Assembly: GCA_964247055.1 (NCBI GenBank)
Contig: OZ176053.1
Coordinates: 8,060,001-8,124,000 of the forward strand
From: Paragordius varius
Lineage: Eukaryota; Animalia; Nematomorpha
Direction of reading: 5' to 3'
DNA: 64,000 bases
Within the stretch, counting starts at the first letter, position 1, and each line of letters opens with the position of its first letter. Made by a program: the position numbers and the translations under genes. The notes under the pieces are model-generated. The model saw nothing but the letters and a program-made list of their open reading frames with translations. It made no database searches and had not been told where the DNA came from. Below, in pieces: positions 50,258-57,247 of this stretch.

Positions 50258-51545
50258 TCATTGAATGATAAATCCACCCCCTGCATATTCGGAAGGCTAA
50301 GAATAACAATATAATGTAGCAAATTTTTTATACGATTTATCGTGTGAATAAGATTTAATATAGCAAAAAATTAAAATTATAAACACAAGACATATAAAGT
50401 AAAAGAAAAACGGTTTTTTGATAAAAAAAATTATATTTTTGAACCTTGGTATTTTCTTAACTGGTTTCAAGGTTTAGAGAATATGGTTTTCTTTGTATAA
50501 ATATATTTATAAATGTTTTACCTAATGTTTTGTTTTTAAAATTTGAAAAAGAAATCACAAAATTAAAATCATAGTTAAAAAAATAATAAGATATATATAT
50601 ATATATATATATATATACCGGAGGAACTTGAATAAAAGATAACCAATCCGACGGATGAGTAGGGAGTAAGCCCATAGCAGCACATTTATAAAGCGCTAAG
50701 AGAATATTACCGATATTTCCAAGGAAATATACAAATTTCTGTATTCCAGCTTGATCGCCTTCAATCAACTTGAATGCTATTTTGTAGATATTAAAAATTT
50801 AATAATATTATTTAAAAATAATAAATATATCATTCAAGTCGTTTTTAACCATTTTATTAATCATTACTCATAAATGAAGCTTGTGTGAGTTTGACATATA
50901 ATATGTTTTAAGGTCATAATTATTTAACAAATAAAATAATAATCCGTGTATGGTTGAATATTATATTAAAAATTGACAATATTTGTTTTTATTATATTCT
51001 TTGTATTTATATTTCCATAAAATTATATGTAAAAATCTTAAAAAAACCGAAACGTTATAAAAATATATTTATGCCAACTTTACCTCGAAATTTAGCATTT
51101 TATAAAAATCAAATATAATCAAAAAAATAATCTTTTCAAAAGTAAAACTTGATTTTATGGTTAAGATGGATTTGATTGGTCCAATCAAAAGCATACCAAC
51201 AACCATAATGGGGAAAAGACTTATAGAGTTACCAGACATGTACATGATAACCATATTCATAGGTATCTTTTTGGCAGATCCCAAAGCAATTTCCCATGAT
51301 CTCTATCATATTAAAATATTTATTTTACTTTTACAATCAAAGCTGGATCAATGTCCTTACTAGCAGCATCTTGTGAAAAGTTTTGTAAAGAAGTATAGCC
51401 AGGCGGATTTATATCCAAAATGTTAGGATTTGCAACTTGTTTATTGCTATCTTTAAAGGATCTAAAAATTTATAATGACAATTAACTTTGTATCGATGAA
51501 CCATTTATGCCTTTTGAGAGTTTTGGGATTTAGCGAGGTCGTCAT
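50258..51545 (-). CDS. EMC4: ER membrane protein complex subunit 4 (TMEM85), 5 exons
   Basis: MTTSLNPKTLKRHKWFID...PPGY...DPALIVK/RSWEIALGSAKKIPMNMVIMYMSGNSISLFPIM...FVYFLGNI...LALYKCAAMGLLPTHPSDWLSF.QVPP/PSEYAGGG. Introns of 25 nt (51462-51486) and 26 nt (51303-51328). Confidence 0.96.
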
Positions 51546-51573
51546 ATGTTAACAAGCGTGTAATATAAAAGGC

Positions 51574-54500
51574 ATGGACCAAGATACATTGGAAGAATGC
51601 TTAACAAAATTTGGTACTCGGGGACTTTTCGCGATTCGGTCGAAATCGTCTGCCTTTTGGATATTAGAAGAACACACCAGAACCATCAAATACATATTAT
51701 ATATTTATACTTTAGGGATATGGATGATTCCTTATTTGTAAAGAGTGCAATCCAAAGAGGCTTATTACCCTGATGAAGTTTTTCGATACTCGGAAATGAA
51801 TTTTTTTATAATAAAAGTTGAGTCACTGGTAAAACTTCAGTTGTTTAGGGGAACAGTACCTATGCCACAGGAAAATCAAAGATAAGTACTTTTTTCTACT
51901 AAATTATATTTTTAATAATCTTTTAATCATATATTCTTATAAATTTTATTTGGGTTATCGTCTGCTCGGTTAAATCATAATTGTTTTTTGTCGTTAACGT
52001 TTCATTTAATTAAAAAAATTGTCACTTATCAACAACTCTATTAATATCAAACCTCTGTTCCAAAAATCAAACAATAATGTCCTTTCCAAAGCGCAGGTTA
52101 TGTACGGTATTATTTTTTTTTTAATTCCTTTTTATTTCTAATATAATAATTTAATAACACTAACCTACAGTAAAAAACTTATCATTATAGTATTTTAATA
52201 TATATATATATATATATATAAACATTTGCAATCATAAAAATTTATTAGAAAAAGTTTTAAAAGGTTATTTCCAAATACTTATATAGCTCACGGTACTCTG
52301 ACAATTGGTTCACCAATTGTACAAAGGGGTGCACCCCGTGTTATTGTCATTGTCATTGTCAAAATTTGGTACTCGGGATTTTATTATGGAAAATGATGTG
52401 ATAACAACGCTGAAAAAGTTTTCTGAAATAGGTGGAGATTTGAATCAAGCTTTTGATCTATTAAGTGATAACTACACCGGTATCGCACAAATGTGTAATT
52501 TATTAATGGACCTTTTAATTTGTACAGGTGTAGAAAATTTGTAAATATAAAGGGATGGCCGAGGAAAACGTTACGTTATTAGTCGAAAATCATTTCATTG
52601 AATTAATGATGAAAAGATTCGACCCTGGCGTAGCCGATAAAAGTTTTATGAACGATGAAATAAATATACTTTCCTGGTTACCCGAAATGATAACTCATCA
52701 ATCATGGCGTAACCTTGTATATAGACTCTCTGAGCAATACCATGATTGTGTCTTTTTGAATTTTGCTATTAAAGTAATAAACAGGTTTTTCATTTAAAAA
52801 ACCATTTTTAATTTATTCAAACGTTTTTCGTCATTAATTTTTTATTTGGAATTTGAAAACCGTTTTGATTGATTGAGAAAGCGTTTTTTATCATATTGTA
52901 AAAATGTATTTCATATTTAGCTAATATCCGACGCTGGTTATCAACATGAGATAACAAGCATATCCACAGCGTCTCAACAAATAGAAATATTTTCTAAAGT
53001 CATAAACACTCTTCTTTTGTCAATATTGGAAATGGATAACGAAAATGAAATTGTCAACAAGTTGGTGGAAATTAAAGTATTTTATAGTTATTAAAACAAA
53101 AAATTTAAAATTAGAGATATATTAAGGAAATTTAGTATTCGGTAAGGAACGAACCCGAATTTATCATAAACAATTTTTAAAATAATAATTTTATAAGGCA
53201 TAAGATAGAACATAAAAGGAGTATAAGGAAGGGGAATACCACATCATTGGTTTTTTAAATAATTGAAATAAATTTAATGTTATTTAAATTACTGTAGAAG
53301 CTTATTTGCCACAATGAACAAACATACACCTATACACTGAGTTTATTACAAAATTTATATGAAAAATTTCCGCAAAATCTCTTATTGAAACGAATTGCCC
53401 AAGTTATTTTTAACATACACATTATAACTTTTTTATATTTAGGGAAACACATTATTTATATATATTTCTTTATTGGCTCTTAATATTAATAACAGCCATA
53501 TAATTTTTAAATATTAAGGAATCTCAAGTTTATGCCAATTCACTAAATTTGGATTCGGCTTATATCGATTCCGCAATACAAAAATTTAATTTGCCCGAAA
53601 TTCAAATCGCCATAACTTCTATGCTAACCAAAAAATCTTTAAACCCAGCCGATGTTACCTTGGTAATTTTTGTTGCTTTAATTTAAATTTTCATAATAAC
53701 TTTATGAAAATAATTGTACCTATTTCATTTCATTAGATTTATAAAAATATAACGAAACCGGACCCTGTCCCAATCGAGATTGTTAGAAATCCCATTTTAC
53801 TAGGTATAAATTTTATGTAATATAATTTTTTAAAATTATGATGTTTAAAATAAAAAAATCGATACTAAGACACCTTCATTTGCATCTTTAAGGGAATGAT
53901 ACGTTTAATTTGGATTTAGTTGATAGAGAACTTATGATAAAATCGCAAATTTATAAAAAGAAAGTCAATACTGAATGTTATTATTGTATTGCTAATTTTT
54001 ATCGAAAAATTGACTATTAAAACCTATTTGAAAAAATATATATTTATATTTCCATGTTATATAAAAATATTAGCTAAATTTTGTTATTTGATTCATTTTT
54101 TATCATTTTTAGCGATAAGAACACTGTTTTTGGTAATTTTAAAATTAATATTAGCTTTTGTTGCTGAATTTTAGATATGTTAGTAGAAGCCTTGTTTAAA
54201 CCACAATCTATTTTGAATCCTGATCACAAACACAAATATATCTATGTTTTAGCATATGGTTGTAGTGTTTTTGAGGTAAATAATTCTCACATATATTTTT
54301 ATACTCTATTCAATAGGCTTTTTTACATATTGGTAATTTTCTAACAACTTTTTATCACGTCATATTATTTCAATAATATATATACAAAAGCCCTACTTAT
54401 AAAGGCCATGATTCTTCTAAAATATGCGAGATTTTGAAAAAATATATATATATGCAAGCTTTTTTGCTAAAAAACATAATTTATATTTAATTTTCTTGAT

Positions 54501-57247
54501 TGAAAATATACCCAATGTTATTTTAATAAAAGGTAAAAATTGTTTTTGGTTTATTATATTTACTAGAACAGGGGTGTTCAACACAAATGTCCCGGGCCAC
54601 ATTTTTGACTCTAAAAACTCCGACCGGGGCCGCATTTATTTTATGGGCAGTAATAAATATTTTATTAGATTTCAAACATAAGATTGCAAAATGTAAAATT
54701 AATATAACATTTTTTTTCTATTTCGTTGCCAATTAGATAGACTTATTTGGAAACTTGTTAAATAAATATTAATTTTTGAGTATTTTTGCGCGGACCGCGT
54801 CTTGGACACTACTGTACTAGAGGGTCATTTATAATAGCGGTTAATTAAATTAAAACTAGATTGGTTAATTTACTGAAAAGTGCAGCATAATCAGCCTGTT
54901 TAAAAAAGTTTATATAATGATTTATATAACATCTGACACATCTTTATATCAGCAGTTAATATGTATAAAAGGTTTTTTGAAAACTTAATTTCAAAAAACT
55001 TTTTAATTTATGCAGATTTATTAAATATTTTGATGATAGATTATGGATTCTTCTCAAACTGTTAAAGTGTACAAAGATGAATTAAAAACTTTGGTTCAAG
55101 CGATCGAAAAAGCTCATAACATTTGTGCTAGTTGTACCAGTTCCTCTGACATCATATTTGAACTTTCATCGCTTTTTTTCTTGCTCAGGTTTGTTTTACC
55201 TAATATAATTATCTCTTTTTATAACAAAAATTTCAAAACCTTATCCATCAATTATTAGTGATATATGATGTAAATAAGGCCAACAAAATCCTATTGCCAT
55301 TTCCCCGCGGTGTTGACTGGGCCATGAAAATGCGCTAACGGCAAAGTCCAGTTTTGTAAAATCATTAGTTGTACACAAGGGCATGTTTTACGTAAAAATT
55401 CTTGTCAGATTACTACGAAATATAAATATTAGGAATATGCATTACTTCGTGGTACGAAAACTCGGAATCCGGTGTCCACCCTTGATGACTAATAAAACAT
55501 GAGTAATCAATGATGATATATTATATTTTTAAAATTCTTGATATCGATAATTTTTGGGTAACTTTTAAAATGAATATATACTTTAATTTGAACATTTTAA
55601 TTTCAGTCTGTCGATTCGAATTGGGGTAGTTGGATACCCCAAAGCCTGTTTAAAATTAAATACTTCAAAAAATATGGAATGAAAAGAAACCACGGCAAAG
55701 GTTTGCACTTATATAACATTAATGAATCGGAATAAAAAATCTCAAAAATACTTGATATTAATTATTTTAAAGTATAACCCAAAGGTAAAAATTTAGTCAA
55801 CATGACATGTGTTCAATAAATAATTCGAAATAAACCACTTTTTTAATTTCTATCAATAGACGTGATTCACTAATGCAAATAAAATATTTTTAAAAATTTA
55901 ATTTGGTCAAGTAAAATAACATGAAAGGTTTTTTGATATATTTTAACCAAAAAGGTATCCAATTATTTCGCTGGGTGTATTTATCTGGGTTAAACACATG
56001 TTACAAGAACCAAACTATTTTAATCAAACTGATCATTGGAACGGTTTTCATTTAACGTTGATTGATGAGATTGCAACGTGTCACCCCTCACTCCATGACA
56101 GAATTTTGCAATTGTTAATTCAACTCATACAAAAACCGTATGGAGATTTGGATGTTTTGGTTCAGGTATGGTAAATAGAGTAATTACACTTGACAACAAT
56201 TTTGTAAGTCGATCTATAATGTATGAACATTCATTTTTCTAAATGACTTTTAATTTCGGTTTATAAAGGAAAATCGGTCATAAACTGAAAGTTGATCGCT
56301 TTTCCAAAGATAATGAATGAACAATCAAATCTTTTCAGGCGTAATGATGATATTTTTATTTATTACATTATAAATATTTTTTAAATCTCTGTTTTTTCTT
56401 AATAAAAGGCATTATACATTCAGCATTTTTACAATTATAGAACGGCTAAAAAACAAGATTTATGATATATAAATGTTAAAAGGAATTTATCTCAATATTT
56501 TTTTATTAAATAGTGCTAGCCTTGTATAATTTATTTTTTTAAAAATCTCTCTTAATAAAATTTTTTCTCAAAACACACAATGAAGACCAATTTTGAGAAC
56601 TATTAAAGATTTTTATTAAATATTAGTTGGAGTTAAAAAAATGCTTATTTGAACGCATGGTCCATCTATTTTCCCGTGGATATGTCATGCCAATATTGGA
56701 TTACGTCAAGAAATGCTGGAAAAGACAGGATACCGATGTTTCTCTAATCCGACATTTTGTATTGGAAGTATTAAATTTTGTTTAGTATTTTTAATATATT
56801 GTTATGAATTTATGATGTCAAATTTCCGTTTACTATCAAGGAAGCTTATTTTTTTGGTATCTTATAATGCAAGGTATTTTATAGCAAAAGAATTCATTTA
56901 CCCCAAAAATATTACAATAAATCATTTTCCAAATTGTTTAAAATGACTAATATTATTTACATTAGGCAAAGTTAAAATATTGGTATATATATTAATGTTA
57001 AAAAAAAGATATTAGATATGATCTCACCTCCCTATCATCCAGAATTCGTTGATGCATTTTTATCCATCATTAAAAACAAGGAAATCACTGGTTCAATCAC
57101 TAATGAAGATCGCTCCGATTTAGTTTCCCATTTTTTAGGTTTTTTTGCAATGATAATAAAATTTTTTGATGGTAGGTTTATATATATATATATATTTTAT
57201 ATATATTAGATTATTGTGAAAAGGAGCATGTTGGAGGTGAATCTTAA
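51574..57247 (+). CDS. NELFCD: Negative elongation factor C/D; first coding exon interrupted by an insertion
   Basis: [16 protein letters not shown] (51574) plus [15 protein letters not shown]...[16 protein letters not shown]; FDPGVAD; [43 protein letters not shown]; LNPADV; [11 protein letters not shown]; YPIISLG; [10 protein letters not shown]; [20 protein letters not shown]; [12 protein letters not shown]; ISPPY. All downstream introns traced in phase. Confidence 0.95.
51605..52377 (+). mobile_element. 737-bp insertion (51623-52359) between perfect 18-bp direct repeats, probably a retro-type insertion
   Basis: CAAAATTTGGTACTCGGG at 51605-51622 and 52360-52377. The 3' end has two hairpins (ACAATTGG-ttca-CCAATTGT; GGGGTGCACCCC) and an (ATTGTC)3 tail. 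Confidence 0.85.
54569..54814. mobile_element. Charlie/hAT-type MITE (246 bp) in a NELFCD intron
   Basis: TIRs CAGGGGTGTTCAAC / CTTGGACACTACTG; 8-bp TSD tactagaa / tactagag with the CTAG core typical of Charlie. Confidence 0.85.
55611..55860. mobile_element. Partial copy of the MITE at 5384-5938 in a NELFCD intron
   Basis: tcgattcgaattggggtagttggatacccc...gcctgtttaaaatt...tttgcacttatataacattaat...aaaggtaaaaattt...aaataaaccacttttt aligns to the reverse complement of ~5695-5930. Confidence 0.8.

Follow-up and report, generated by a model that had tools for sequence, protein, structure and literature searches.

Transposable elements that insert into exons can be removed in part by cryptic splicing, as known for Ds in maize genes, 412 in the vermilion gene of Drosophila and Tc1 in C. 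elegans. The locus described here, in the first coding exon of the NELFCD gene of the hairworm Paragordius varius, resembles these cases in that imprecise removal of an exonic element, through sites in or near its ends, might leave the allele leaky and the protein a few residues longer. It differs from them in that splicing of Ds, 412 and Tc1 was shown in RNA, whereas for NELFCD it is an arithmetic possibility read from the DNA. The inserted element is also comparable with the SINE-like retroposons mobilized by LINEs, with which its family shares defined ends, target-site duplications (TSDs) of 8–18 bp, a stem-loop followed by a simple-repeat tail, 5′ truncations and the lack of coding capacity. 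Unlike these retroposons, the family has no detected tRNA, 5S or 7SL head, HDV-like ribozyme or partner LINE; in contrast to SINEs, the element is long (737 bp) and present in few copies (tens).

A third comparison is with introners. Documented transposon-derived introns include some that take one splice site from the target duplication, and among these are introns that arose from non-LTR retrotransposons (PMC12130899, PMC11282704). As in introners, the insert in NELFCD lies in a coding exon, with one candidate splice site in the TSD and the other in the element (PMC12130899, PMC11282704). Introner families, however, are known by many copies acting as introns in unrelated genes, whereas the family studied here has no such case among 29 other copies and offers poor splice sites. 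As to the host gene, the hairworm protein resembles other members of the NELF-C/D family (TH1, PF04858), with coverage of TH1 positions 41–571 and an N-terminus that aligns to human residues 48–107. It is unlike them in its first exon, interrupted by a retroposon, and in its first intron of just 25 nt.

The assembly comprises 110.6 Mb in 44 contigs. The window, the whole stretch of 64,000 nucleotides analysed here, lies on contig C4, and its G+C content ranges from 23 to 40% and is mostly ∼27%, in a genome that is very AT-rich. Genome-wide, eight matches to PF04858 were found, all above the cut-off and all at the NELFCD locus, with E-values down to 3e-19; in comparisons made exon by exon, single NELFCD exons reach 5.5e-16 and 4.1e-20 against the TH1 profile. 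The left flank of the insertion is unique in the assembly, where neither an empty allele nor a second haplotype copy of it was found. Thus, NELFCD is a single-copy gene, represented in the assembly by the interrupted allele. It consists of eleven exons, curated singly and with phases checked arithmetically, and of ten GT–AG introns of 25, 147, 221, 116, 74, 371, 764, 766, 461 and 241 nt. The features of the locus are collected in Table 1.

Table 1. Features of the NELFCD locus (positions in the window) and family members with exact target-site duplications
Feature	Position	Strand	Remarks
EMC4, divergent to NELFCD	51072..51545	-	Pfam EMC4, E 1.9e-15 for 51072-51284
NELFCD exon 1, 5′ piece	51574..51622	+	ATG, 16 codons in all, then base 1 of codon 17
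Left TSD copy	51605..51622	+	holds GT 51614-51615, candidate splice donor
Retroposon copy, non-autonomous, non-LTR, 737 bp	51623..52359	+	gene-sense orientation, young subfamily
TAA closing the unspliced frame from ATG 51574 after 55 codons	51739..51741	+	
3′ inverted repeats of the element	52301..52337	+	motif kept in 38 genomic copies
Hairpin, 8-bp stem	52301-52320	+	
Candidate acceptor AG	52325-52326	+	amid the 3′ inverted repeats of the element
Palindrome GGGGTGCACCCC	52326-52337	+	
(ATTGTC)3 simple-repeat tail of the element	52342..52359	+	
Right TSD copy	52360..52377	+	
NELFCD exon 1, 3′ piece (DFIMENDV...LICT)	52378..52527	+	TH1 profile positions 41-100, E 5.5e-16
NELFCD intron 1, 25 nt, GT-AG	52528..52552	+	
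NELFCD exons 2-11 plus nine GT-AG introns	52553..57140	+	phases consistent, internal stops none
Family copies with exact 12-18 bp TSD			L001, L002, L003, L005, L008, L012, L014, L017, L020/L021, L023

The insert is directly bordered on both sides by the 18-mer CAAAATTTGGTACTCGGG, whose two copies are identical at 18/18 positions. The right copy begins with a C that may equally belong to the third ATTGTC unit as its final base, and the duplication therefore measures 17–18 bp. Both insert ends match the ends of >25 other genomic copies, an agreement that is therefore far beyond chance. From the ATG at 51574, the left repeat is read in frame as ...LTKFGTR, and the right repeat as KFGTR, in frame with downstream NELFCD, so that codon 17 is split by the insert. 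Since the 3′ piece of the exon aligns with human NELF-C/D (E 5e-13, with six PDB sequences), the insertion point falls between the equivalents of human R54 and D55. The initial annotation, made from the sequence of the window, had described an 18-bp TSD around an insert splitting NELFCD exon 1 and a frame colinear with NELF-C/D once the insert is removed. Both descriptions hold: the repeat is exact and stands at the canonical ends of the family, and the right repeat together with the 3′ piece matches the human protein. The two inverted repeats and the (ATTGTC)3 tail that it placed at the 3′ end of the insert are likewise present, and target-primed reverse transcription, with which it had called them consistent, is supported by the family. 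The fold of the 3′ inverted repeats is no more stable than that of shuffled sequence (z = −0.6). Its unspliced stop, by contrast, had to be moved. It had been given as a TGA near 51771, but the TGA at 51771–51773 closes another frame, opened by an ATG at 51597, and translation from ATG 51574 runs to the TAA listed in Table 1. The 16-residue N-terminal piece is too short to be assigned alone, and the 55-aa read-through ORF that contains it was unmatched in Pfam and PDB searches.

The element belongs to a dispersed family of ∼735 bp without coding capacity (longest ORF ≤58 aa), with at least 38–46 copies in the 110-Mb genome. A search of the genome with the insert gave 46 matches from 146 candidates, among them 26 copies of 83–97% identity that are near full length, i.e. 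lacking at most 30 nt at the 5′ end and 12 nt at the 3′ end. The 31-nt palindrome plus tail motif occurs 38 times in the genome, versus no occurrence of a reversed-pattern control, and the copies terminate in (ATTGTC)n. Exact TSDs of 12–18 bp, unrelated to each other in sequence, flank at least nine of 30 copies (Table 1). Across the family, TSD lengths vary from 8 to 18 bp, with 1–2 nt of homology between tail and target, and 5′-truncated copies occur (including L018, L027 and L041). Collectively, the dispersed copies, the tail, the variable TSDs and the 5′ truncations indicate that the family is non-autonomous and copied by a LINE-type reverse transcriptase. Rfam (E ≤ 1) and ARAGORN searches of positions 51500–52500 detected no tRNA, 5S, 7SL or ribozyme head. 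No partner LINE was found in a genome search with the 98-nt tail and the 31-nt motif, in which three tail-only or split-match loci were inspected. The tail-only loci, considered as candidates for this LINE, turned out to be truncated or interrupted copies without an adjacent reverse-transcriptase ORF and were rejected. Because neither a Pol III-type head nor a partner LINE was found, the family is called ‘SINE-like’ rather than SINE. Placement of the element in NELFCD exon 1 by target-primed reverse transcription is supported by its termini and by its relatives. Both the insertion and the way it arose can be taken as established, and the event is of an ordinary and well-documented kind, namely a gene-breaking insertion.

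Two copies of the family (L020 and L021, at C4:2478678 and C4:2453491) have identical flanks and form a direct duplication, 25 kb apart. Two others (L011 and L015, at C1:13327255 and C1:13312880) also have identical flanks and form an inverted duplication, 14 kb apart, L015 carrying an extra insert of ∼340 bp. About ten loci match element positions 21–437 only (e.g. C1:9927165–9927557 and C2:6673790–6674197); these loci with the 5′ module alone may belong to a family related to it or derive from the element by deletion.

For 29 other copies, empty sites were rebuilt and an ORF was sought across the junction; none of the 29 splits a host coding exon. The only copy inside an ORF (L022, C3:12341765–12342457) lies in the integrase of an LTR retrotransposon, with 145 + 109 codons across the rebuilt empty site. 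The initial annotation had pointed to a genome search for other copies, for their TSDs and for signs of their splicing. Copies and TSDs were indeed recovered, whereas interrupted host exons were absent from the 29. As no other copy interrupts a host exon, the family falls outside the definition of introners. Selection against exonic insertions predicts the same absence of exonic copies.

The copy in NELFCD looks young from its perfect TSD, its membership of the youngest subfamily and its few private changes. It is 96–98% identical to seven other members of this subfamily and differs at 10 positions from their consensus. Four of these differences are ancestral, being found in older copies too, one occurs in a single other copy and five are private; a private deletion of 1 nt comes in addition to these five substitutions. 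Four of the private variants were searched genome-wide and occur nowhere else. If the private variants post-date the insertion, the age of the allele corresponds to ∼0.7% neutral divergence. However, no other member of the source lineage of this copy is among those sampled, and the variants may instead have come from a source outside the sample. The same variants bear on a technical explanation, in which a repeat copy was misplaced into the exon during assembly. A precise 18-bp TSD exactly at the canonical ends of the element, in a copy with private variants of its own, is the signature of a true insertion and not of a collapsed or chimeric join, and such an artefact is very improbable.

We favour the interpretation, with a probability of roughly 0.45, that the insertion is a fairly young and possibly segregating disruptive allele, from which the proposed splice does not remove the element efficiently. 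A non-coding retroposon of ∼735 bp, mobilized by a LINE-type reverse transcriptase, entered codon 17 of the sole NELFCD gene in gene-sense orientation and duplicated 18 bp of its target; this much is shown. Splicing from GT 51614 to AG 52326 would fail to remove it efficiently, leaving a null or hypomorphic allele, and the remainder of the gene would be intact mainly because the time for decay has been too short. NELF-C/D is essential in flies and mammals. A homozygous null should therefore be lethal, so that the allele would be heterozygous or tolerated. Further observations weigh against this interpretation. First, if the private variants arose after insertion, ∼0.7% divergence is long for a lethal allele. 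Second, the ten introns and 1577 coding nt downstream of the insertion are all intact, which at this divergence has a probability of ∼0.07–0.17 under neutrality. This probability rises to 0.3–0.5 at the lower age bound. With so small a private divergence, intactness at P ∼0.07–0.5 in the absence of selection makes a weak argument for maintenance of the gene, and the earlier statement that NELFCD appears to be maintained, drawn from its intact downstream exons, is likewise weak.

The competing idea of a splice rescue is that the element leaves the transcript as a new 713-nt intron, giving a full-length protein with 14 additional residues, and that an intron gain is in progress. Its arithmetic, as first put forward, is correct. 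Joining 51613 to 52327 takes 713 nt out and leaves 42 nt in, with the frame kept and free of stops. Equally correct is the accompanying remark that exact excision requires TG as acceptor at 52367–52368. The open stretch 52302–52377 has AG 52326 as its sole AG, and ahead of the stop the sole GT in the right phase is GT 51614. Thus, no other GT–AG pair preserves all residues; two further pairs in frame remove 21 or 23 conserved residues. The idea also draws on the acceptors of NELFCD, AAG in four of its ten introns, on the weakly defined donors of the genome, on a length of 713 nt that fits the range of the gene's own introns and on the documented introns that borrowed a splice site from a TSD (PMC12130899, PMC11282704).

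The sites themselves argue in the opposite direction. Their scores come from a weight matrix based on 11 curated introns of the same genome, for which the real sites were scored leave-one-out. The donor GT 51614 obtains −6.8 bits, versus +2.3 to +9.0 for real donors, and ranks in the 8th percentile of the 2791 GTs of the window. The acceptor AG 52326 obtains −6.7 bits, versus −2.3 to +8.8 for real acceptors, and ranks in the 22nd percentile of 2475 AGs. Neither site thus reaches the score of any curated one, and most GT or AG dinucleotides taken at random score higher. The putative intron is also unusually rich in G+C at its two ends (57% in the first 30 nt and 37% in the last 30 nt, versus 7–30% and 13–23%, respectively, in real introns). 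Better-scoring sites inside the element (e.g. acceptors 51715 and 51817, donor 52097) would compete. Moreover, no other copy of the family acts as an intron in a host exon, and the 14 added residues would land in a conserved N-terminal segment. As the matrix is small, with its 11 introns, the low scores reduce the odds of the splice model without excluding it. Rescues by two introns, with a part of the element retained between them as an exon, were also considered. Among 324 in-frame and stop-free combinations, those with all four sites above −2 bits all use acceptor 52431, which deletes conserved residues; these rescues were rejected.

Splice rescue is therefore possible but unsupported, and its two sites are candidates read from sequence; the initial proposal of a possible intron gain in progress finds no support in sites scoring below all 11 curated introns or in a family of which no other sampled copy splits a host exon. 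It is accordingly improbable that a non-LTR retroposon is becoming a spliceosomal intron in an animal gene that is essential and single-copy, within its first coding exon, and the reading in which the element leaves as an intron is itself unlikely. If the splice were true, transposon-driven intron gain would be ongoing in a metazoan, in a genome that also has introns of 25 and 32 nt. A real 51613/52327 junction would make the locus a dated, single-locus birth of a retroposon intron in an animal, with the ancestral sequence readable from the TSD. If the junction is not used, the essential gene NELFCD carries an ordinary insertion allele that is probably segregating, of interest mainly as a caution for annotation, as automatic models will truncate or mis-start the gene here.

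The allele might instead be tolerated because of a downstream start. A cryptic promoter in or near the element would give RNAs that begin within its final ∼285 nt; these would be translated from ATG 52386, and their product would lose only the first 20 residues. A downstream ATG had been noted earlier, and it does exist in frame, at 52386–52388 and not from 52388 as written. It has an A at −3 and a G at +4 and is the first ATG past 52100. No plus-strand ATG occurs in positions 52103–52385 (283 nt), where ∼5 are expected from base composition, so that ATG 52386 is the one that RNAs with a 5′ end in the final third of the element would use. The product would keep TH1 positions from ∼50 on and all other exons, and the intact gene and the private variants are compatible with a tolerated allele. 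However, a promoter in or near the element is hypothetical, and the ATG-free stretch is common to the whole family instead of being specific to this locus. RNAs made from the ancestral promoter would have nine ATGs upstream of this one, and the residues lost (ECLxKFxTRD) include ones identical to human NELF-C/D. Tolerance through a downstream start is thus rather doubtful, though somewhat less so than removal of the element as an intron. Regarding a bypass by a spliced leader, a nematode SL1 model, which covers SL1 with other leaders being possible, gave no match.

A further possibility is that the hairworm lineage is losing NELFCD, the insertion being the first lesion of a new pseudogene. Nematodes, the sister phylum of hairworms, are not known to possess NELF. 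The candidate for NELF-B in the hairworm genome is, in addition, extremely divergent. It is an intronless ORF of 603 aa (L042:235–2046, minus strand, i.e. C3:4682317–4684128) that matches Pfam COBRA1 with an E-value of 6.6e-4 and 19.2 bits, below the cut-off of 22. Its six best PDB matches are all NELF-B (E ∼0.03), in two colinear stretches. Against loss of the gene, the NELFCD exons match TH1 strongly and carry no other lesion, and the reading frame of the NELF-B candidate is open over its 603 aa. Incipient loss of NELFCD is quite unlikely. As this candidate is open, though divergent, the NELF complex is probably still in use, a point that weighs against a disruptive allele of NELFCD as well.

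The claim that all other exons of NELFCD are intact stands if the 25-nt intron 1 is accepted, and falls otherwise. An intron of this size is unusual for an animal, but it is bounded by GT and AG and its removal restores exact colinearity with the TH1 profile. The 25-nt gap was also considered as a frameshift lesion, an interpretation rejected on the GT–AG bounds, the restored colinearity and the existence of a comparable intron elsewhere in the genome. This other intron, also GT–AG and 32 nt long, lies in a myosin-head gene (L043, C5:4359900–4360700, minus strand, reverse-complement positions 392–423), where excising it likewise makes the protein exactly colinear with its Pfam profile or conserved motifs.

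Finally, NELFCD has a close neighbour. The putative ATG of EMC4 (51543–51545), read from the nucleotide sequence alone, is 28 bp from the ATG of NELFCD, the two genes being arranged head to head. Given this spacing of the starts, the retroposon lies ∼80 bp from the presumed shared EMC4/NELFCD promoter region, and it might affect both genes.
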